Part shown: positions 24,461 through 64,000 of the stretch, piece after piece
Layout of the letters: each line of letters starts with the position of its first letter
Numbering within the stretch: position 1 is the first letter of the stretch
Assembly (NCBI GenBank): GCA_001642005.1
Contig: LWCA01000046.1
Location: 3,874 to 67,873 of the forward strand
Direction: 5' to 3'
DNA from: Intoshia linei
Lineage: Eukaryota; Animalia; Orthonectida
Length of the DNA: 64,000 nt
The notes under the pieces: model-generated
Databases searched by the model: none
The model's input: the letters and a program-made list of their open reading frames with translations, nothing else
What the model was told of the DNA's origin: nothing
Translations under genes and position numbers: made by a program

Positions 24461-27400
24461 TCATTTCGTCTCATTGGAACACATTTGATATAATTTTGGA
24501 ATAACCACAAACACTATCGCCAAAAATAATATTGCACTAACAACTGATGCTATAATGATTATGATTCGTAAGTCTAAAATTAAAATTAAATTGCATGACG
24601 TAAATACTATTATATTAAATAAAATTATGTTTATGTGCCCAGTTTTCTCGGTTTAGACTTTATCTCATGTTTCTAACTCAGTCCAATTTACTGTGTTACT
24701 TACTTAAATATTCGGTTCCTCTAAATGTCACATCTCTGTTTATAAACAATAATATTCAATATTATAAATTACATGATTTATATTGATCACTCATGATGGA
24801 CACATCGATACTATCACAATAAATTCCAGTATATGGGGAAGTACAGATGCATTTCGGTGATTCAATTACTGTTTTATCACAAATTCCGCTATTTTTACAA
24901 TATTGAGTATCACACAAATCTAAAGAAAGATATATTTTCAATAAACCAAATAACAACGTTGACATCCAGAAATTTTTTTGGTCCAACCTGCTCGACATTT
25001 ACAAGTAAATCCAGTTTTTGTATCGACACAAATATTACCATCTTCAAAAGATCCACAATTGTGGTTTTTATTAGTGCATTGGTTAGCTAATAAAATGTGA
25101 TTAAATTAAAATATCCAAGATGTGTATGTGTATTAATTACAAAAACAATCCATTTTTGATATTGATCCTACATCAGCTGTTGTAAAGGTTTCCGGACAAG
25201 AAATACAAATTTCATTATGTACAGTATCGTTTGTTGAAAATGTACCGATAGGACACATTTCGCATACATTATCTCTGGTTATAAATTGGCCAGCCTTACA
25301 ATCAGCTAAATATTACAATTAGAAATAGATTCGATTTGAATTACAACAATTATAAAACAATTACCTATATTACAATTCTTGATAGATACAGAACTTAAAT
25401 CCAAAGTAGTATAATTTAATGGACAATTTTTACATTCTTTGTGAATTGTATGATTTCTATATGTTCCTTTTTTGCATGGTTGACATGTTAAAGCATCTAC
25501 AATCTGTTCATATCCAGATTCACAATAATCTAAAATAAAAATTTAAATAGTAATAAACGTTGACTAGTATAAAAAGTTAAGTTAGTTTATTATGTGTATA
25601 ATCATTGGTTGTGGTCATTTATAAGCGTTTGATAGATAAGAAACGAAAGATAAATTGTTATGAAATATGAGACAATTCTTTAACGAATTATCAATTTTTG
25701 TGAAATGTCAATAATAGAAGTGGGCGTGGTCAATAATGTCTACAAACCAAACAAAAATATGTTATTATTTTAACTACAATTTTTAACTAAAATAACAATA
25801 TTTAATCTGCAAAAGTTAAAATTCAATATATACTTACAAATACAATCTGATTTGACCGTCATTCCAGTTTTAATTGTAGTGTAATTTTTAGGACAGTCGA
25901 TGCAACTCGATTGTCCAATGTTTGGTTGATATGTTCCTCTTTCACATTCGATGCAATCACTCAATATTCTTTTAAAACCTTTATTGCAATTGACTAAATT
26001 AATATATATATATAAAATTAAAAATTAAAACTAAAATATAGCAGAATAAATAGGGAACTCATAAATAAATATTTACAAATGTACAGTCCAAATTTATAAT
26101 CTTAAATATACAATACATTTTACTTTCTACATTGTAATACTTGTTAATTGCAATTTATATTATAATATAAATAATTATATAAATTGTATAATTATACATG
26201 TAAATATATTACTTATGTCGCAGTCAAGTTCCAATGATGCTGTTGTTGTCGATGTGGTTAATCCATTTTTACATTTATTGCACTTCAGAGGATCATCAGT
26301 AATGGATCTATAATATCCGATACCACAATTTTTGCAAATGTCAAATTTTTTGTCGTAATATGTTCCTTGATTGCATAATTCTAGTAAAAAATTAATTGAA
26401 AAAACGTACAAAATTAAAATAAATGTAAAGTGGACATTATGTCAGTTTCGAACCTACTGTACTTTATGTCCCTCTTCGGGGAGTGGTTTGGACTGATGTA
26501 AATTTTTGTAAGATGGAAGACATATCTATGATTGCGAAAATTATTTTTGGCTTAAAATTTTTTCTAAATAAACTAAAATTTAATCGAACATGATTATATC
26601 GAGATATCACTGTAATACTAAATCTATATCTCCGATATTCAATATCTAAATCACTGCAATAACCATACTGTATATTATGTTTTTATTTATTGTTATAATA
26701 TATTTAATAAATAACCATAATTACATATGCATAGTTATTAGCCATTTTTATTAGTTTTATATTTCTAGGCCAAAATAAAATTTTGTCACTGTGATTTCAA
26801 ATTTAATTTAAATTTAAATTTACTGTATTTAAAATTCAGATCCAACAAAGTTCCGGTTTATTTTATTTTTTTAACTTAAAATTTGATTTTTTCTTGAACT
26901 TATAATTAATATCAAACATTTATATTGTAAAAGAAGTATTTTATTTTTTGTACAAGATATTAATCTATAAATACACACCTACTATATTGCAATACCTTAC
27001 TTTAATGGCTATTGAACGATTTCATTAAATATCGAAAAGCGACATAAAACAATAAAAATTAAAACATACCTATTGTGCAATCATCGATCATAGTAGACGC
27101 AATAAATTCAGTTATTTTATTGTTTGGGCATTTGATGCAATTGGAGGTATCACTGAGATATTTATAATAGCCAATTTTACAAGGAATACATTTCGCGTCC
27201 ATATATTCATGACCAGAGAAACAATTGCGTATGCTACAGTTTTCTAGAGACGTGGATCCAGTTTTCTCTGTCAAAAGTTGATCGGGACATTCAAGACATT
27301 TAGATAATGTTTCATCTTTGTAAAACCCAATCTTACAAGGTACGCAAACATTTTCAACATCTTCGAAACCATTCAAACACAAATGTATATTGCAATATTT

Positions 27401-51255: not shown

Positions 51256-54200
51256 ATGATTAGATTTAAATTAAAAATTCGTTTAATTTTATTTTTCATC
51301 ATTTTATCTCAATGTACCATAAAGGTTTTTTTTCATTAATTTTATTCAATTTATGTATTTTATGAAATTTTTATTTTATATTTTTTAGTAATTGAGTTAT
51401 ATTTTAATTTATTTAAAAATTTAGACAACGAATATTGTCGAATTTGAATGTCCAACAGGTTAATTTTTATACGAATTATAATAACATTTAAGGTTAGATT
51501 GACTGTTATGTACTTGGCATAAAAAGTAGCTGGCTCCAGAGAGGGTCGAATTTTCAATTTTAATGCCCATTTCTTTAATTAATTATAATCATTATATTTA
51601 TGAAAATGAGAGTTAAATCTTAAAAACAAACCAAACAGACATTATAACACAGATTAAATCTGACAAACACCTTTTATATTATTTCATTTTTCATATTATT
51701 GCACATTTTGAAGGTATGACACAAATATAAAAATTTAAATAGAGGAAGACTTTCGCCATGTAAACTTTACATTAAAATTAATTTAATCTTATAATGAAAG
51801 TGAAACAGGCACATTAAAATTCAGGCTACTGCAGTGAAGTAGTTAAATCAATTTTTTTATTACGCGTCGTACATTTTTGTATTAACTTACTAATCATATT
51901 GGCCCGCCATTTGCTGATGTATACCACGTTCAAAGTAATATATTTTAATAATTTTAGGTTGGACTTTAATAGATGATAAATGTGTGAAATATTTCAGCCA
52001 TTTAACGACCTGGGAATATGCTCTTAAAAGTTGTGATAGGTAATATATATTTTTATTTATTTTTTCGGTTACTTCATTTGTTATATTATTGTGGCAAAAG
52101 AAAAAAATTGGTTACTCAAAAACTTTTAAACGTCAAATTATCTGTATATTGATTGTTATTTATTCAAAAATATTTCATACCTTAATGATAATGAATTATT
52201 TACAACGTATAATAAACATTTTATATATGTAATACATACTATGTATATTAAAAATGCTTAAAATTTTAATAAATAAGTTTTTGTCTACGTATCTAAGGTT
52301 ACAAACATAAAAAAGTTTCAAAATGATTGATAAAAAATATACGAAATAATAATAATAATAACTATAAAATAAAAGAGTAATAAGTTATTTATACACTATA
52401 TTTTTATGATTTACACAGTTTTAATAAAGTTTACTCAGTATTATTTAATTTTACGGATTATACATACTTTTTACACATATTGTAATAAAATAATCAACAT
52501 TTCCACTTACTTTTACACTAGTTCCTAAATTTATTTGGATACAATACAAAATATATAATTGTATAATTAAATTTTTTTAATTTAATATTGACCTGCTTTT
52601 ATTGTATGTATGATAAAAATATTATTAATTAATTTTTGAATAATAAATAGATTAATTCGTATTTATATATGTACATGTATGTATGCATATATATAAATAT
52701 ATATCGATTAAAATTTAATTAAAAACATAAGGCTTAAATGTATTTTAAGATTTGAAACCATTTGCGCTGTTGGAATATACATATTATCTAATTTAAAATT
52801 ATAGTATGCAAAATATAAATTCTGTCTACGGTTTTGTAGAAAAATTTATGGATTAGAATTTTAAAAATAAATATGATTAACCAGTCTATCATGGTCAGAT
52901 ATAATTAATTAAACATAGAAATGAATATATTATTATAAATCAGTTAAAAAGAAATATATGCATAAATTTCGAAGATAAAATTGGTCCCTACAAACCCCAG
53001 TTAAGAATGAAATGCTGCAGAACCAAGAATATTTACATTTAATTATACAAAAATTTGAAAAATATTGGTTCATAATATATTAAAAGTTATTTTTGACTGA
53101 ATAAGTAGATTTTTGAGGTTAAATTTTTTAATTTTTAAGAATTAGAATAATCTATTTTTTTAAATTCAAAGACTATTAGTGATTGGTTTTTTTTTTAAAT
53201 AAATAGTTATCAGATAATAAGAATCAAATACTAAAGTACTTTGTTCTTTTCAACGTGAAGGCCTCAATGTGTGAAATTTAACTGAAGTGTATTTTGTGTA
53301 TTAAATTATAGATTTTAAATTACCTTATTTTAGTGAAGGAGCAAATTTAATTGAAATTTGGGGAAATAAACAAAATGACAAGATTTTCGATTATGCCAAA
53401 TCTCAGAATCCCACTGTGAATGAGTATTGGATAGGTAATTTATAAATAATAAATTAATACATTATAAATTGATGCTGTATTTGTTTTTTTCATATTTAAA
53501 AATGTGGTTTTTTATAAAGACCCACTTAAAATAAATAATGTGACCATTTTGAGACATGTGGTACACAATGATAGATTTAAAGGCAACTAATTTAAAATAA
53601 ATTTGGATACTTTCTACATAAAGGCTTACGTAAAATTATGTTTTCAAGCATTTTAAACGTTTATTCTGATGTACACACAGAACCGAACTTACGGTATGTA
53701 AACCCCTTCTCGAAGGATATTCTTGTAATTTTTCTAAAATTGTGCCTTGTTTTTCCAAGTTGAAAATTTAAAAAAAATATGGTATTTTTTAATAAAAAGA
53801 TGGATTCTTAACTACTAAGTATATAATGAGACTAAAATATGAAAATAATATGTTTATTTTTTAGGAATGAACAGAATTGGTTTACTTGATAAGACATGGA
53901 TAAAATGGTCAAAAGGTACTACGATAAAATCTCAGGATAGCGGATATTGGGCAAATAAACAACCAGATAACACTGCTAATTCTATTAAGGATTGCGTATC
54001 TGCTAAAACTCAACAAAAAGATTTTATATACCCTGTTGCCTACCTTTTTAACAAATGTTCCGATAAAAAGCACTACATTTGTCAAAAGAAATCTGTATGC
54101 CTAAAAAGTAAATTTTACAATATTTGATTGCAGTGTCAATAGTAAACTAGTTTGTAATTATTATAATTATCCATATATAAATTTAAATTTGTGAGTATTC

Positions 54201-57200
54201 TAACCACTATTTAAATACTTAAGTATTTAAGTTATGGAGTTTTAAAAAATTTTAATATCTGATAACAAACATACCAATATTACAACAATACAACCTGTCG
54301 ATCGCAAATGATTTTCTAGTCGATCGCCAAAATTATAATTAATTTTTTATTTTAATAATATTCGTCATTAAAATGATTTCTATTTTAAAACAATTTATTA
54401 TAATATTGATAAAATTTAATTGTATTTATATATTGTTAAAAAGAATTTAATTATATGTGGAGTGGGTACCGAAACTATATTTATTTAATCCCTTCTCTAG
54501 CAATATTATTAAATGATGTACTTGCTACATTAAATTATAATATTTGGATTAGTCCATTATTTATTATACTTGGTTTGGCCGATAATTTTCAAATATACCG
54601 CGAAAGTGCTTCGAATTATTCAGAATTTTAATTTTTATGTTTTCTACGATCATCCTTTTTAATTTTTAACATAGGTTCCGATCAGAAACATTTTTCTAGT
54701 CAATGTATTAGTCGATCGACACTCACTGAACATTTTTAAAGTCGATCACATAAAAAAAAAGTTGGGCACCCCTGTACTACACAATGTAACATGTATATTA
54801 TACATAGTATACTTTTTATAATGATTAATTTTAGATTACTTCAGCTGTAATGAAGGAAAATGCATTAAAAATGAAGATTTATGCGATCAATATAATGATT
54901 GCATTGATGGGTCTGATGAATTAAATTGCCGTATATTTTTAAAGACGTTTATATATATTTAATATTTAGCTAATAAATTTTATAAATTATTATCTCTTAC
55001 TACTGGAACCATTACGTTCTCCGTCGGTTCGACAAAATATAATGAATACAAATGGCTTATATCTTCTACACCTGGAAATCGAATTCTACTAAAGGTTACA
55101 TTTTAAATTAATACTAGGTTGACTGCTATGTACTACGTACAAACAGGACCTAGCTCTGCCGAGAGCACATTTTTTGTTTTAATAAAATATTTCGGAAAAA
55201 ATATATATGAATATTAAAACGCTTTTATGACCATGATTGTTTTAAATTCTAGGGCTGTTTTCATTAAAAAATTAAGGGTCATTTGTGGTTTTGGCCCTGA
55301 AGATATAATTTTTTTAAATTTAAATTTATGATAATGTTTATGATTTTAAAATCTGTATCAGCGTATATATTTTTTTAAATTTTCCAACTTGTTTGATTTT
55401 AAAAAAAAAAAAATTGGGGTTTCTAACCAGTAAGATGTGAGTTTGGGAGGTTAAAATTTATTTTGCGAACACCCGGGAAAAACTGTAATTGAAATGGAAA
55501 CTTTATAAAATTAAACCATTTTATATATAATATAAGAATATAAATTAATATATATATAAGACGAATATAATTATAAAATAAGACGGATATTTATTTAATT
55601 CAAGTGGAACACACACAAAAACAAAAATCGCGTAACATATTATATAAGTAAGGATTATTTTGGCACCAAATGAATAACTGCAAAATATTTTACATAAATA
55701 TATATTATATGCTGTGAAAGCCATCTTATAAATTATATTTTAATGGTCATTAAAAAACCGCACCCGATACCTCTATATATTATTAATATCATATTCTTCA
55801 ATTTGAGCTATTTTAAATTTAAATTTAATATCAAAACTCTAGAAAAGATGGTTAGAGCTATATGTACTATACATATAAAAATTTTTGTGGATATATTTTG
55901 TTTTTCGTTATTTACAGCATTGTATTTGGTTTTGCTTGATAAGACATGTTTAGGAACCTCTGCCTTAAAGCAGCGTTTCCCAACCATTTTGCTCTGGGTC
56001 CAAATTTAATTTGATTCCTAGAATTTTAACAAATATACATTAATAATCAAATTTTTCAGAGCATAAATTAAAATAAATGTCAATCTCAGAAACTTACCGC
56101 TTTCCGGTGAAAAACCCTAGTTCAATTATATTACTTGATTAAATTTAAACATATATTGATAATTTGTGTTGCGGCTGTGATTATCAAATTCGCACCGGTT
56201 GGGTTTTTTAATCATTTGTGGATAATTTTTATTACATTTTATTTATTTGTAAATTTAGTTTACACAATTTATTTCTCAAAAAGATATTGATATTGTAAAA
56301 ATATATAGTGGAGCAAAAAACACTATAGACTCGACATGTATTGCAATTTACTCTGGAGTTTTAACTGCCGATCAGTTATCTCTGGTCAGTTTAGATAATA
56401 ATGTTATTATCGAGTTTATACCTTCTTCTGTTACATCAACATTTTCTTTCACGCTTTCTTATAATGCAGGTAGTTTATTTTTTATTTTTATAATAATAAT
56501 AATATTAATAATAATTAATTTATTATATAGTAAATATTATAATTACTATAATTGCTTCTAATTAAAACATGAAATATTTAGTGGATGATCAAGAATTATC
56601 GAAAAAGGAAATTTTAAAAGCTAAGACTACATTGATTGATTTAACATCACCAAACTACCCTAATCCGTCATATGGTCTATTTCAAAAATATTGGGACATC
56701 ATTGGAGTAGAAAGATCTGTGATTACATTGACGGTAATTATACATATTGTATAAATTAAAAAATGTAAGTAAAAATTATTGATCAGGAAAATTCGAATTA
56801 TAATTCTATGATGCAGAGGTCATCATTATGGTACACTGGATGAAATTAAAATAAAATTTAATTTATACCTGTGTATGTTACTGTTTTATTAAAAAATTAA
56901 TTATTCTAGAATTTTGTCTTTAATTTTTTAATAATTTTGACTTGTACGAGAAATTTGAATTTATTTTATAGATTAAAGATTTACATTTGGAGAAACAAGC
57001 CACAGTTCAAATTATAGATAATAATAATGGTAATCCCATAATATTGGCAAATTACCACAATGAACAATTTTGGAAGAAAGAGATTAGCGTAATATCAATA
57101 ACAAACATTGTTTCTGTTGTTTTAACAAACAATTACAACGACAAGGCGTATTTTAAACTTAGTTATATGCAAGGTAATTTTTGGATCAATTTTTACATTA

Positions 57201-60200
57201 TAATAATTAACAAACTTTTGATAGCATTTAAAAAAATTTAAATTTAAAAATTAAGGTTGTGGATTCAATTTGAAAGCAATGAAGGGTGTGATAAGTTCAC
57301 CAGGATTTTCATTATTTGACTATCCACCAAATCAAAAGTGCGTATGGACGATTGAACCAACAAACTATCCATTTTCATCCTCTTTGACACTAAAAAGATC
57401 ATTAGCGTCTGATAACTACAAAATTTTTATTGATGATTTTTTGATTGTAAATTCTGTTGATGCTAATAATAAAGAAATTTCCATATTTGAAAGTAAAAAT
57501 GATATTGGAGCTTTAAATGACTTGGTTTTGGTATCTGCTACTGGAAAATTTACCGTAAAATTTAACACGAATGCAATCAATCAAGCTTCCGGTTTTCAAT
57601 TGACATTTTGTATTGATTGTACTGATCCCAAAATTGATAAGTTTACCGTTATGACTCCAAACACTCGAAAAATTGGAGACAAACCTGTTTTTACATGTCT
57701 GAAGGGTCACGTATTTGTACAGGATGCTTACAAAACACAAAATTCAATTAATTCTGAATGTAAAAGTGACGGTTGGAGTATTTGTCCCATTCCGAATTGC
57801 CAACGTATGAATATCTTTATATTTTATTTAATATATTTATAGCTATTGTGTGCGGGAATCCCATCATTGATGCAAACACTATATTAATTTCTAAAACTGG
57901 AATTGTTTATCAATCGGTAGCAACTTATAAATGTACTCCAAATTCTATACTTGATACTTCTGTAACTACCGTGTTAACTGCCACGTGTCTTGACACTGGT
58001 AAATGGTCCACCTCTCCAAAATGCAAAGGTGAAATAAATTTTGTAAAAATTTAATTTTTTAATTTAGTTGTAAGCTGCCCAGTTATAGTTATTGTAAATG
58101 GAGTAGCAACAAAAACATTTGGAACTTTAACTGAAGTTAATTCGATATATTCCGTCAAATGTAATCAAGGGTATTATACTTCCTCTGTTAATTTGGTTAA
58201 ATGCGGAATCGATTTGAAATGGTCTCCTACATTACCTAGTTGTTTAGGTATGTATTTTAATTTGTAGGTATTAATTAAAATTTAGCTGTGTCATGTCCGA
58301 CTAGAATTTACCCTTATTCTGATTATGTTAAAACTAACATTGATTTGAAAATTTTGAAATATAAGGAATCTACTCCAGTTTCCTGTTTGGTTGGATTTAA
58401 AGAGAAAAATGGAAAAACTACAGTTGAATGTCAAATTAGTCAACTTTTAACAGATTTTGAATGCATAAGTAATATAATTAAACTAGCTTAATTATTATTT
58501 CACATTTTTTGTTTTAATGAAATATTTCAAAAAAAAATATATGAATGCTAAAAAGTTTTTTTGACCGTGAATTTATCACTTATTCGGATTAAAATTTGCT
58601 GTATGTGTTAACAGGATACAACTGTACAACCTGTAAATTTTATGAAATTCTAGGGATATTTTCATTAAAAAAAGAAAGGTAATTTAAGGTTTTGGCCCTG
58701 AAGATATAATTTTTTTAAATTTAAATTTATGGTAATGTTTATTATTTTAAAATCCGGATCAGCGTATATATTTTTTGAAATTCCTTAACTTGTTTGATTT
58801 TTAAAAACAGAAATAACTGGGGTTTTTGACCCGTAAGATGTGAAATTAGGAGGTTGAAATTTATCTTATTATACGTCGCGGAAAAAACTATAATTGAAAT
58901 GTGGTCTTTAAAAAATTATAAGACTAATAGTTATTTCAATAAAGTGGAACACACACACACACACACAAACAAAAATCGCGTAGCATATTATATAAGTTAG
59001 GATTATTTACACAACACAGAAATATATGTAAACTACTGTTTTAGAAAATATTTTTACAATTATAATAACAAATGATAAAATTAGATATCGATGAATGTGC
59101 CACAACTAAGCCATGTGATGTTAATTCAGTGTGTGAAGATTTATTAGGTGGATACAAATGTAATTGTAAAGCTGGATACTCTCAAAAGGATCAAAATACG
59201 TGTCAAGGTTTAAATTATTAATTTATGAGCAATTATTAGCTGGGGGGCACCTGTTATCATAAACAATGAAAGGGTTAATAAAAAAATTATTTACATTTTT
59301 TTTAAAGTTTGAGTTGATTTTACAGTATATTCTTGACAAATAAAATATTTGAAGGGGTTCATAGATTGAACAGTTTAAAATTCCATCATAATATAATAAT
59401 AATTATTGTATATAAAATAATTTTAGATATTGATGAATGTCTGGTAAATAATGGCGGTTGTGAGGAAAAGTGTACCAACACTTTGGGTTCATATACTTGT
59501 AGTTGTACGACAACGGGTAAAATAATATATTCTGCGGCAAACTTGAATAATATTCCTTTGGGAACTAATGAAGACGGTACAAAGGTTGGAGACATTCCAC
59601 GAATTCAACATTCTTGCATCTGTAATTTGTACAATATAAAAATATAAAGTTTAATAGATAAACAATGTACTCTGCCGACATTAGTTGCAGCTGTTGATAA
59701 ACCTTTCAGGGTGGTATCACCGGTTAAATCAAAGACAATCATTTATGTTGGCGAAACTGTTTATTATAGTTGCAATCTTGGATACATTATAACTGGTGCT
59801 GCGTTTCACAAATGTTTAAATGGCGAAACAATAGTTGCTCCAACTTGCGCTCGTAATTTATAATTCATAGAGAATAATTTAATATTTGATTTAAATAACT
59901 AGCTTTTGAGTTTTATGTATTTTATAAAAACAATAGCTAGCTCTGCTGAGGGTAACTTTTTAATTTTAAAACCGATTTCTTAATTTATTAGACAATGAGT
60001 ATATGATTTTAAAAAGAATCAAATTATAGTTATACCCCGAAAAAATAGTCATAATAAACATGAATCCGAGAAAAAATAAAATTTAAAATACACATTTTAA
60101 ATGTACCTGTAATACATAATTTTTTTTTCTATTGTCCCACTTTCCACGTCTAACTTACCACGTCTCATGTTTAAAAAAAGGGTATATGAGTTTCGTCTGA

Positions 60201-63200
60201 GAAGGATATATAGTTTTTATAATGGACATTAATCTTAATCTTTATGATTTTAAGTGATTTATGATTATTTATGATTTTCAAAAAAAAGGATAATTGGGTT
60301 TTTGACCCGTAAGATGTGAGTTTCGGAGGTCGAAATTTATTTTACTTTTACCCGGAAAAAATTATAATAGACTTTATAAATTCTAAGACTCGTAGTTATT
60401 TAAATAAACGATAACACACACAGATGAACAAAGCATTTTATATAAGTAAGGAAAGGATAGGTAGATTTTATTAAATATATTAATATATATTTAGAAGCAA
60501 AATGTGTTATTCCTACCGCACCAATCAAAAATGCTCCAGTATTAACGCCAACCTTTGGAAGTAGTGTAAATTTTGGAGATAAAGTTTCCAAAAATTGTGC
60601 AGGTATTCAAAATGGTGCAACAACGGATCTATTTTGTATTTATGACTCTACAGATAATAGTTACAAGATACATTACGGAGCATCTCTAGAATGCCCAGGT
60701 TTTATCATTTTGTATATAATTTAATTTTTAAACAATAGTTATTGACTGCGGTGTGCCTCCAACTGTATTGAATGGTGATTTAGTTTATACATTAACTTAT
60801 GTGGGTTCAAGTGTTGCGGTCAATTGCAAAACGAATTTTCATTTGGCTGAAGATGTTAATAAAAATAGTAAATCTGTTTTGTGTAAAATTGATACAGGAG
60901 GAACTCATGCTTATTGGGATTATCAAAGTGTTGAATGTGTTGGTAATTTTGATTGTTTTATTTTGTATTTATGATTTTTTAGCGATTAGTTGTAAAGAAC
61001 CTACTTTACCTGCTGAGGCAACATATACTTTCCCGGATCTAAACAATAAAAATTTTGGAGTTGGAACAGTATTAACTATAAGTTGTAGTCTAGGATATAC
61101 ACCAAATGTAGCAACAATGACGTGTACGGTTGCAAATAACGTCCCCGCTTGGAACCCTGTGGCAATTTTGTGTGAAGGTATTTCACTTGTATTATTTTTT
61201 ATTATTATTATTATTAGAATTTACTTAAAAAAAATTTAGATAAAGAAAAGCCTGTTTTTACTGCGTGTAGTACGGCGGTTTCTTTTGAAAGTGGATCTTC
61301 ACCAATAATATCAGTGACAGTCACTGATAATTCTAATCACTATGTAATAACAAATGATTATCTCGGTTTTCATTTTACAACTCTACCAGCAATGATCGCT
61401 CCATTAACCATTATTTATACAGCTACGGATCCCTCGCAAAATAAAGCAACATGCACTGCAGTTTTAACTCCATATGGTAATTTTTAGTTTAATTATAAAT
61501 AATTTATAATGTAGATACTGCACATGTTTATTTTACATGCCCTACGTCGTATGTAATAAAAGTCAATCCTAGCGGCAGTGTGCCAGCATTTGATATTGCA
61601 AAAACTCCAGTGACAGGAGCCGTCGGATTTTCATTAGTGACTGATTCAGCAACTGTGAGTGCAGTCGATGTAGGAAAAATCAATGTTTTTAAAATAACTG
61701 GTACCAAAGGCATGCAAAAAGGATCGTGCTATTATAGTTATTCTGTCGAATTAAGTATATTATCGTTAATTAACATTTTATATCGAATTTAGATCAATGC
61801 ATGAGTAATGGATTAACTCAAATAAAAAACGCTGATATTACCTATACTACAGACGTCAACAATGATTTTGTTGCTAACTTGAAATGCAAGGCTGGTTTTG
61901 TTTTTATGAGTACAGGACTTGACGCGGCTGTGTATAATTGTAAACTTGCCGATAATCTTTGGAAAAATGGAATCAAAGTCATTGAAGATTGTGTCGGTAA
62001 ATAAAAATAATATAAAAATAAATTATAAAAGATACACCTGTATAAATGATTTAATTGATATTTTAGCCCAAACGCCTAGTAGCAAAACGACAAAAGTGGT
62101 TCACACTTACGCTACAGCCAGTTTGTTGACTCAAATATGCATGGATGGACATTTAGCTGCGTTTAAAGTATTTGAAGCAACATTATTATTAACGTTGACA
62201 AACATATGCAAACAAACATATACTGTACCCGGTGGTTGTACGGCAACTACCTCTAATCATGCTATTGCAAAAATTAATGATAAAGAGGTTTCTTTTATAT
62301 GTCTATATTACGCTGTATTCATTTTTGACCTGTTTCTTCACTACCTTCCCTCCGTTTTTTTAAGATCAAGAGGAAAATAAACTTTTGAGAAGACTATTAT
62401 ATACTATTTAAAATTACTGATACAAATATATAAAAATTACTGAAGGGACTTTTTGAGAAACAAGCATGTTTATTTATTTCTTGGTTTATGTTTATTTGAT
62501 TTTGGTTATTATTAGGTTTTTAAAGTTATGAAATACCAATATCGCCTATATGATTAATATAATAATTTCAAATTTTAGTATACAATAACGGTTATTTTCT
62601 CATTCTTACCAGACAGTTTGTATGCTGTGTATATTGCTCAAATGAAAGTTTTTCTTGACAAAATTGTGGCATTTCCAGCAAACATATTAAAAACAACAGG
62701 TTGCGTAGATGCTACATATGGTTCATATGCACTGACATTAACTGAAACATGTGCGGCTAATCGTATTAAGAAATTGATTGGAACCTACAATTTTTGCTGT
62801 AAAATTTTTATTATTGCATAAGTTACTATTAGTAATTATCATTTAGTGGCTTGTCCTGCTGGTACAAAAGCAGTTACTACCAATACCGTCGTGACGTGCC
62901 CAGTTTGCGCAGTTAATACATTTTCAGCTGCAGACTCTTTGACATGCACTGCCTGCCCCACCGGTAAAATTACAGTAGCTACGGGATCATCCTCTGCAAA
63001 CGATTGTATCGGTACATATTTTTATAATGATAAATTTGGTATAAAATGATATTTAATTTGTTAAATAGATACATGCACTTCCAAGGGATGGATAGCTACT
63101 AACGCAGAACTTTACAAAATTTGTAAACTTTGTCTTATAACAGAAAAATTCGATGCTGCACAAAATAAATGCGTAGCATGTACTGTGGGTGAACAATCAT

Positions 63201-63639
63201 ACGATCTACGCACTACTTGCACAGCTAAATGTTTAATAGGCGAATATTCGCCGACAGGATATGGTCCATGTAAGTCGTGTCCCAAAAACTTTTATCAAGA
63301 TTTAACTGGGCAAATGACATGCAAATCATGTGGCGCAGCCAAAGTCACACTGGCTGAGAAGGCATCTGCTATCGCAAGTTGCGTTGCTAACACAGATGCA
63401 GGAGGTTTATTTTAACATTATATTTAATATAATTGCTTTAGTATGCCCTGCAGCATGTGCTGGTGCTTGTTCAGTAACTAAATTTATTGCGACGTGTAAT
63501 ACATGTGGGAATGGACTTGAGCTACCAGATTGTGTCAAAGATAAAGCTGTTTGTGCTAACCATATTTGTCATTATAAGGGAACATGTGCGATAGACAAAA
63601 CAAAAAACCCGGCTAAACCAAAATGCACTTGTGTTCCAG
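51256..63639 (+). CDS. uif: Uninflatable-like paralog B, 5' part (28 exons, about 1,780 aa traced; continues beyond the window)
   Basis: Exon 1 (51256-51324) reads [23 protein letters not shown], then [11 protein letters not shown]|[13 protein letters not shown]. Exon-by-exon homology and matching splice phases with paralog A run through the lectin, LDLa, CUB, CCP, EGF, HYR and GCC domains. No stops or frameshifts seen. Confidence 0.85.
54290..54774. mobile_element. hAT MITE remnant
   Basis: Right TIR GTTGGGCACCCCTG; repeated subterminal GTCGATCG motifs at both ends; left TIR truncated. Confidence 0.5.
55114..55654 (-). mobile_element. Non-autonomous Helitron, complete copy
   Basis: A|TCCTTAC 5' end; same double hairpin and CTAG|T 3' end as 4285-4772. 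Confidence 0.78.
58483..59002 (-). mobile_element. Helitron family copy
   Basis: A|TCCTAAC 5' end; CTAG|T 3' end; body matches the family. Confidence 0.72.
59899..60457 (-). mobile_element. Helitron family copy, internally rearranged
   Basis: A|TCCTTTCCTTAC 5' end; CTCAGCAGAGCTAG remnant at about 59937-59950; CTAG|T at 59899. Confidence 0.6.
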
Positions 63640-64000
63640 GTTTTTTCAATTCAAATTTATTAATATTTTGTATTACACCTTTTCTACACATTGTATGTTA
63701 TATATTAAGGGTGTGAACGAATTTTTATATCAAAAGTGCACCCTTGCACCATATGAACATTATAAAAATATTCAATTTGCACTCAATCTTACCACTCAAC
63801 TGTTAAAAAAATCCTGAGGCATCGCCTCTGAAGTTTTGAACAACATATCGCTCACAGTAACTAATATATGATAATTTTGTTAAAAATATTATTTTAAATA
63901 TAAAAATTTTTATACATATAGCTAAAATATAAAGATATATAATATATATAAAGATGCGCAAAATTATCGTCTAGCGAATCATGAACGCCGAATTGATAAA

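Follow-up and report, generated by a model that had tools for sequence, protein, structure and literature searches.

The window analysed here comprises 64,000 nucleotides of the 41.6-Mb genome assembly of the orthonectid Intoshia linei (contig C2734:3874-67873; GC content 26%). From 51.2 kb to the contig end, its plus strand carries a multi-exon gene, here called gene B, which is supported as a real gene for a giant, signal-peptide-bearing Uif-like ectodomain, and whose mature product, in the part encoded within the window, contains no usable N-glycosylation acceptor site (the sequon N-x-S/T, with x other than P). The model of gene B consists of 28 exons (51256-63639), all with GT-AG boundaries, and encodes a stop-free product of 1801 amino acids (aa), of which 1778 aa make up the mature product downstream of the signal-peptide-like start in exon 1. 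The gene is incomplete, as the contig ends at window base 64000. A paralogue, here called A, lies head-to-head with B on the minus strand; A 48921->37584 is colinear with B 51954->63656 in tblastx comparisons, every exon of B has a counterpart of matching length in A, many of these lengths being identical, and aligned exon pairs are 48% identical. The features are as follows.

51256..51324, plus strand: B exon 1, start codon and signal peptide; donor AAG/GT
51425..51458, plus strand: B exon 2, linker preceding the C-type lectin domain; TTTAG acceptor, CAG/GT donor
51958..52039, plus strand: B exon 3, first part of the C-type lectin domain; 56% identical to A 48921-48826, 82 nt as in the A exon
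53334..53434, plus strand: B exon 4, middle part of the C-type lectin domain; NPT at ~53407
53865..54107, plus strand: B exon 5, last part of the C-type lectin domain; Pfam Lectin_C E=0.0046 (below the curated cut-off), 48% identical to A
54835..54930, plus strand: B exon 6, LDL-receptor class A; Pfam Ldl_recept_a E=5.8e-11
54970..55094, plus strand: B exon 7, CUB-like domain, first half (probable); colinear with A 47952-47846 and without a Pfam hit
56259..56469, plus strand: B exon 8, CUB-like, second half; weak Pfam CUB E=0.027, 42% identical to A
56582..56733, plus strand: B exon 9, CUB-like; NPS at ~56662, no Pfam hit
56972..57173, plus strand: B exon 10, CUB-like, second half; no Pfam hit
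57256..57804, plus strand: B exon 11, CUB and Sushi; Pfam CUB E=3.4e-8, Sushi E=0.0055, aligns to arthropod Uif residues 433-607
57843..58028, plus strand: B exon 12, Sushi; Pfam E=4.5e-5
58068..58247, plus strand: B exon 13, Sushi; Pfam E=1.2e-8
58286..58468, plus strand: B exon 14, Sushi-like; 51% identical to A 44564-44331, no Pfam hit
59085..59207, plus strand: B exon 15, calcium-binding EGF; Pfam EGF_CA E=2.7e-10
59427..59621, plus strand: B exon 16, calcium-binding EGF and linker; Pfam EGF_CA E=1.4e-6, 77% identical to A
59658..59852, plus strand: B exon 17, Sushi-like; 63% identical to A 42996-42793
60495..60698, plus strand: B exon 18, Sushi-like; 64% identical to A
60739..60942, plus strand: B exon 19, Sushi; Pfam E=0.0017
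60983..61177, plus strand: B exon 20, Sushi; Pfam E=0.0044
61240..61476, plus strand: B exon 21, HYR-like; weak Pfam HYR E=0.027, homologous to A 41923-41711
61515..61754, plus strand: B exon 22, HYR-like; NPS at ~61565, 53-54% identical to A 40178-39918
61793..61996, plus strand: B exon 23, Sushi-like; 49% identical to A 39906-39712
62067..62314, plus strand: B exon 24, less certain in its boundaries than any other exon; no Pfam hit, 25% identical to A 38911-38669
62579..62798, plus strand: B exon 25, true acceptor possibly further downstream; no Pfam hit
62847..63038, plus strand: B exon 26, ephrin-receptor-like Cys-rich repeat; Pfam Ephrin_rec_like E=5.3e-7
63069..63404, plus strand: B exon 27, ephrin-receptor-like repeats; Pfam E=7.1e-11
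63442..63639, plus strand: B exon 28, Cys-rich EGF-like, ending at a GT donor; 42% identical to A 37799-37584
63700..64000: interspersed repeat of ~300 bp at the contig end, which breaks the assembly of gene B; at least 40 copies elsewhere in the genome at 79-91% identity
24762..48917, minus strand: paralogue A, 42 modelled exons, ~4250 aa; head-to-head neighbour of B
24464..24652, minus strand: probable transmembrane exon of A, IIIIIASVVSAILFLAIVFVVI; mean Kyte-Doolittle hydropathy 3.26 over 20 aa, outside the A model

The gene model was obtained with a small splice-aware dynamic programming gene finder trained on the long open exons and introns of the window. Its 26 internal B exons (51958-63639) are stable at intron penalties of 11-13, and the introns of the gene are mostly 30-110 nt long. 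A low intron penalty combined with re-estimated splice matrices produced dozens of spurious micro-exons, and the model at penalties of 11-13 was kept. The signal-peptide exon at 51256-51324, first found in the earlier note on this DNA, replaced the first exon proposed by the gene finder, and the 34-nt exon at 51425-51458 was included; with exon 1 adopted in this way, the 28 exons are the same as those the earlier note had translated by hand. The weakest support attaches to the first two exons and to exons 24-25, the latter being free of sequons under any plausible choice of boundaries. Pfam and database searches were conducted per exon, and joined translations were used only for counts, local pairwise alignment and a tree.

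The mature product of B contains 123 Asn, close to the ~120 estimated in the earlier note, and 18.1% Ser+Thr. Not one N-x(not P)-S/T sequon is present, compared to an expectation of 21.5 +/- 4.1 from 5000 whole-protein shuffles (21.0 when residues were shuffled inside 30-aa blocks), which corresponds to a Poisson P(0) of ~5e-10. The only N-x-S/T triplets in the mature sequence are NPT at aa 87 (~53407), NPS at aa 348 (~56662) and NPS at aa 1273 (~61565), exactly the three unusable sites listed beforehand; the absence of sequons from the window part of B is confirmed as real. The reversed motif S/T-x-N occurs at its normal frequency (24 vs 21.4 expected), as do N-S/T (21 vs 22.4), K-x-S/T (30 vs 25.0), Q-x-S/T (11 vs 8.2) and N-x-C (9 vs 6.9). 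The earlier note had further suggested that D-x-T often stands in place of sequons; D-x-S/T was found 15 times vs 16.9 expected, which speaks against a systematic replacement of Asn by Asp. In the window part of B, 267 single-nucleotide changes at 180 positions would each create a sequon.

The 3' half of B was sought elsewhere in the assembly. Using the 1264-aa exon of A as query, three further loci were identified, on contigs C2523, C1684 and C1687, which encode the NCBI Intoshia linei proteins P0122, P0001 and P0003, respectively, at 97-100% identity. C2523 (11.6 kb, minus strand) starts aligning to A at ~37600, where B stops, and residues 2055-3350 of a Uif orthologue align to C2523 following residues 433-2015, which align to the window exons. 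Furthermore, the identity levels to A match (46% for C2523 in the giant exon and 48% for B in exon 11). As the alignments to A and Uif begin where B ends and the identity levels agree, C2523 is likely the 3' continuation of B. P0122, the NCBI model of C2523 (2296 aa, partial at both ends), carries precomputed PF13385, PF07699, PF25024 and PF00008 domains; no hydrophobic segment was found in P0122, and C2523 too runs off its contig. The depletion persists in this 3' half, on whose sequon count the earlier note had made its claim depend: P0122 contains 2 sequons vs 27.8 expected, and our own model of C2523 contains 2 vs 26.5. Combining the window part with P0122 (4074 aa) gives 2 sequons vs 49.1 expected (Poisson 6e-19), with the reversed motif again at normal frequency (56 vs 49.3 expected).

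These counts also bear on an explanation by artefact or chance, whereby wrong exons or frames, a pseudogene, or compositional or nucleotide bias would have created the apparent absence. The gene model is computational, with weak support for exons 24-25 and the first two exons, and a genome of 26% GC is of unusual composition. Against this stand 28 open GT-AG exons that are colinear and 48% identical with A, an independent NCBI model of the 3' half with the same depletion, and local-composition shuffles that leave the expectation unchanged; a combined P of ~6e-19 argues likewise, and this explanation is close to refuted. Compositional or nucleotide bias as a cause was rejected on the basis of the normal reversed and shifted motifs.

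Uif is a giant single-pass protein of the apical surface composed of C-lectin, LDLa, CUB, Sushi, EGF, HYR and ephrin-receptor-like modules. Drosophila Uif is reported to be N-glycosylated, and its ectodomain contains CLECT, CUB, CCP/Sushi, HYR and many EGF-like repeats (PMC3340373). Per-exon Pfam searches of B (E<=0.0055) identified Ldl_recept_a, CUB, five Sushi, two EGF_CA and two Ephrin_rec_like domains, with three of the Sushi matches below the curated cut-off, in addition to sub-threshold matches to Lectin_C (0.0046), HYR (0.027) and a second CUB (0.027). This domain set matches the Uif mosaic, to which the Pfam strings of uif-named proteins add LDLa, LamG-like and ephrin-receptor-like domains. 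B shares with the Uif proteins of Drosophila, other arthropods and spiralians (often annotated as 'SVEP1-like' or 'fibropellin-1') the same mosaic in the same order, namely signal peptide, C-lectin, LDLa, CUB, Sushi, cbEGF, HYR, ephrin-receptor-like, EGF, LamG-like and a long ephrin-receptor-like array, and the transmembrane-like exon of paralogue A is a further similarity. In tblastn searches, the arthropod uif protein P0183 and the Lottia orthologue gave colinear high-scoring segment pairs at 23-51% identity, among which the EGF hits are promiscuous. No match to F5/8 type C (FA58C; PF00754), of which two copies are listed as a Uif family feature, was found on any B exon. The mollusc and annelid orthologues likewise lack FA58C in their precomputed Pfam strings, and the domain probably characterises arthropods rather than the family as a whole. 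Unlike other Uif proteins, the Intoshia copies number three, evolve fast and have a very long branch. A quick maximum-likelihood tree was built from the C-terminal halves of Uif-like sequences only, without outgroup families (SVEP1, CSMD, other Sushi/CUB), and carries long-branch and composition warnings; in this tree the three copies form one clade (SH-aLRT 100) whose very long stem sets them opposite every other Uif-like sequence.

Sequon poverty is not a habit of the Uif family. Orthologues were collected by a homologue search started with a bivalve relative and are full-length with the same architecture, several being named uif by NCBI. They contain 27-102 sequons with observed/expected ratios mostly of 0.9-2.4, in contrast to 2 in the 4074 residues of B. 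The 12 arthropod Uif sequences contain 27-34 sequons (observed/expected 1.09-1.51), and full-length spiralian orthologues range from 0.67 in Mizuhopecten through 1.0 in Lottia and Saccostrea to 2.0-2.4 in Argonauta (102 vs 51 expected) and Owenia (94 vs 40); the lowest ratio among orthologues, 0.41, belongs to a partial Ruditapes protein. This comparison, which the earlier note had proposed, thus turned up no purge of the kind seen in B in arthropods or full-length spiralians, and a general trait of these domain types was rejected as a cause since the orthologues are sequon-rich. Within spiralians, bivalves (0.4-0.98; P0006, P0120, P0219) and the cephalopod and annelid (2.0-2.4; P0134, P0136) lie apart. 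Uif proteins may serve as a general sensor of pressures on surface glycans that differ from lineage to lineage.

Ectodomains from the same genome were counted as a control. Eleven cadherin ectodomain open reading frames (9075 aa, ~9 loci) contain 114 sequons vs 128.7 expected (0.89), which is indistinguishable from their reversed motif (116 vs 128.0; 0.91), and three generic long open reading frames contain 15 vs 12.5 expected. Since the cadherins lack any sequon-specific depletion, the depletion is not genome-wide and is specific to the gene family. The Intoshia linei genome encodes two STT3 loci of the oligosaccharyltransferase (OST), ALG7, ALG3, UGGT and a calreticulin-family gene, and the presence of OST and ALG genes that the earlier note wished to see verified is thus established. 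Loss of the glycosylation machinery was discarded as a cause, both because these genes are present and because such a loss predicts neutral sequon density rather than depletion. Searches of the assembly with Pfam Alg6_Alg8 and GNT-I (MGAT1) gave no match, although such a search does not show absence. If both absences are real, Intoshia would build unglucosylated precursors and only oligomannose-type N-glycans.

A lineage-wide effect, in which many or most secreted Intoshia proteins are depleted, for instance as a consequence of unusual N-glycans, and the Uif copies are just the largest examples, would draw on the depletion of all four family members examined, on the lack of a GNT-I or ALG6/ALG8 match as a hint of an unusual glycan repertoire, and on the restriction of the same-genome control to a single family. 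The cadherins, whose sequon ratio equals that of the reversed-motif control, and the three generic long open reading frames point the other way, and we regard a lineage-wide effect as improbable.

The earlier note had pictured A and B as a pair of one glycosylated and one N-glycan-free protein. This picture holds only in part, as A itself is depleted about three-fold, with 18 sequons vs 51.3 expected, while its reversed motif is found 47 times vs 51.3. P0001 on C1684, the third paralogue, whose giant exon is ~40% identical to that of A, contains 8 vs 24.7, and P0003 (C1687:28942-33654), a shorter family member also of the 3' type, contains 4 vs 9.4. A third Uif-like 5' half is located at C2138:13599-14135 (plus strand) and is 40% identical to B exon 11. 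Intoshia linei therefore possesses at least three full paralogues and a shorter ephrin-receptor-like protein, all sequon-poor, and the pattern is that of a graded, family-wide sequon purge which is complete in B. Of the sequon differences between A and B listed in the earlier note, INNS/IKNE, NGSW/TGKW and INHS/IQHS are reproduced by exon alignment and TNQS and NNAT are present in A, while YNFS lies just upstream of a modelled exon boundary and NNIS is absent from every frame.

Two aspects of the A model deserve mention. The IIIIIASVVSAILFLAIVFVVI stretch is found shortly downstream of the final exon modelled for A, and the model probably stops at least one exon early. Between its HYR-like exons, at 41625-40271 (minus strand), A contains ~76 codons more than B (A 41919-41625 and 40440-40271 vs B 61240-61476), which represent either an extra module or intron read-through; an NYSV sequon counted for A falls in this doubtful part.

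The remaining sequons are unevenly distributed along the proteins. Residues 1-3600 of A contain 10 sequons vs 42.8 expected, compared to 8 vs 8.8 in its last 648 aa, and both sequons of B fall within the C-terminal 170 aa of P0122. A CP-x-NYTT repeat motif holds one of the two, which A and B have in common. Given that sequons persist at neutral density in the membrane-proximal repeats of both paralogues, selection appears to target the distal, outward-facing portion of the mature proteins.

This distribution is also informative with regard to folding and secretion economy, according to which glycans on a slowly folding protein of ~4000 residues and ~400 Cys would invoke the calnexin/UGGT cycle and mannose-timer endoplasmic-reticulum-associated degradation (ERAD), so that selection would take place in the endoplasmic reticulum (ER). 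UGGT and a calreticulin-family lectin are encoded, the proteins are extremely Cys-rich (~6% in the window part of B, 8-10% in the 3' halves and A), and selection against sequons for the sake of folding has been documented for buried sites and BiP (PMC5562741). However, the last repeats of A and B keep neutral sequon density, with one site conserved between them, and a single glycan suffices for recognition by lectin chaperones and ERAD. With their membrane-proximal sites retained, A and B would still be ER glycoproteins, which disfavours a pure folding or ERAD economy; moreover, orthologues of similar size and Cys content carry 30-100 sequons. We consider this explanation unlikely, if somewhat less so than a lineage-wide effect.

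Statistically, the counts demonstrate purifying selection against N-glycan acceptor sites in the Intoshia Uif family, acting within the orthonectid lineage. Sequons lie far below the level set by composition and control motifs are normal, in a protein predicted to be exposed to OST by its signal peptide and by the encoded OST/dolichol pathway. The effect is specific to the family insofar as the one control family, the cadherins, shows 0.89 vs 0.91 for its reversed motif and the full-length spiralian orthologues range from 0.67 to 2.36. As the best overall explanation, to which we assign a probability of roughly 0.62, we propose that selection has stripped sequons from distal B and that the mature protein is nearly free of N-glycans. 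Gene B would represent the 5' part (1.8 kaa) of a Uif paralogue, one of three that are specific to the lineage. Its signal peptide would take the protein into an ER with a working OST, an activity predicted from the genes, where every N-x-S/T acceptor in the distal ~3,800 residues would have been removed, and would still be removed, by purifying selection. Mature B would be displayed nearly without N-glycans, next to sister copies A and C that are ~three-fold depleted. The underlying cause could be a need to keep N-glycans out of contact with the environment, be it host lectins or immunity, or a need for glycan-free modules in packing or binding.

Several points weigh against this explanation. 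The join between B and C2523 is inferred rather than assembled, and the true 3' end of B, with its transmembrane segment and tail, was not found. The B model is computational, although it was reached both in the earlier note and here and is colinear with A. The division into distal and proximal parts was picked after seeing the data, although it recurs in two paralogues. Some bivalve orthologues (the partial Ruditapes protein and Mizuhopecten) are moderately sequon-poor, so that low density is tolerated elsewhere, and with a same-genome control drawn from one unrelated ectodomain family, the depletion may extend to a wider class of secreted proteins. Lastly, lectin evasion and packing are not separable by these data.

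Oligomannose is a classic lectin target, and if GNT-I is truly absent, any leftover N-glycans on the Intoshia surface would be of this type. The copies might, tentatively, form a Uif-derived orthonectid surface coat stripped of N-glycans as 'glycan stealth' against lectin-based innate immunity of the host; such a coat would be the inverse of the viral glycan shield. The three Uif paralogues are candidates for key surface components in a parasite about which very little is understood.

Bushkin et al. (2010) reportedly described selection that disfavours N-glycan sites in the secreted proteins of Plasmodium and Toxoplasma. Intoshia would resemble them as a parasite with secreted proteins poorer in sequons than composition predicts. 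The effect in Plasmodium and Toxoplasma would be of proteome scale, in protists with truncated glycan precursors, whereas in Intoshia it concerns one gene family of an animal that keeps ALG3, UGGT and a calreticulin-family gene and whose cadherins are unaffected. As a rule, sequon frequencies are taken as weak signals at the level of the proteome. The Intoshia Uif family, by contrast, gives an all-or-none signal (2 vs 49 expected, with 30-100 in orthologues), which makes selection against N-glycosylation directly visible, and open to testing, in one protein. Furthermore, the graded depletion across A, B and C, with the membrane-proximal repeats as internal control, offers a natural experiment that could show the costs of N-glycans on an exposed metazoan surface, or what they give away there.

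Negative selection against sequons is known for buried sites and for the ER Hsp70 BiP (Medus et al. 2017, PMC5562741), where a similar proposal for apicomplexan parasites is also cited. As in B, N-x-S/T is specifically under-represented in OST-exposed protein in these cases, which is interpreted as selection against harmful glycans. In contrast to the buried positions and compact ER chaperone described there, the depleted region of B is the distal part of a modular ectodomain of ~4000 residues. The unusual feature here is the scale and sharpness of the depletion in a single modular animal ectodomain with sequon-rich orthologues.

In addition to the repeat at the contig end, copies of another repeat were identified in introns of B (55236-55512, 58579-58988 and 60262-60458) and in an intron of A (35895-35488), with tblastx identities of <=85% in several frames. 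This repeat is probably transposon-derived and does not represent coding exons.

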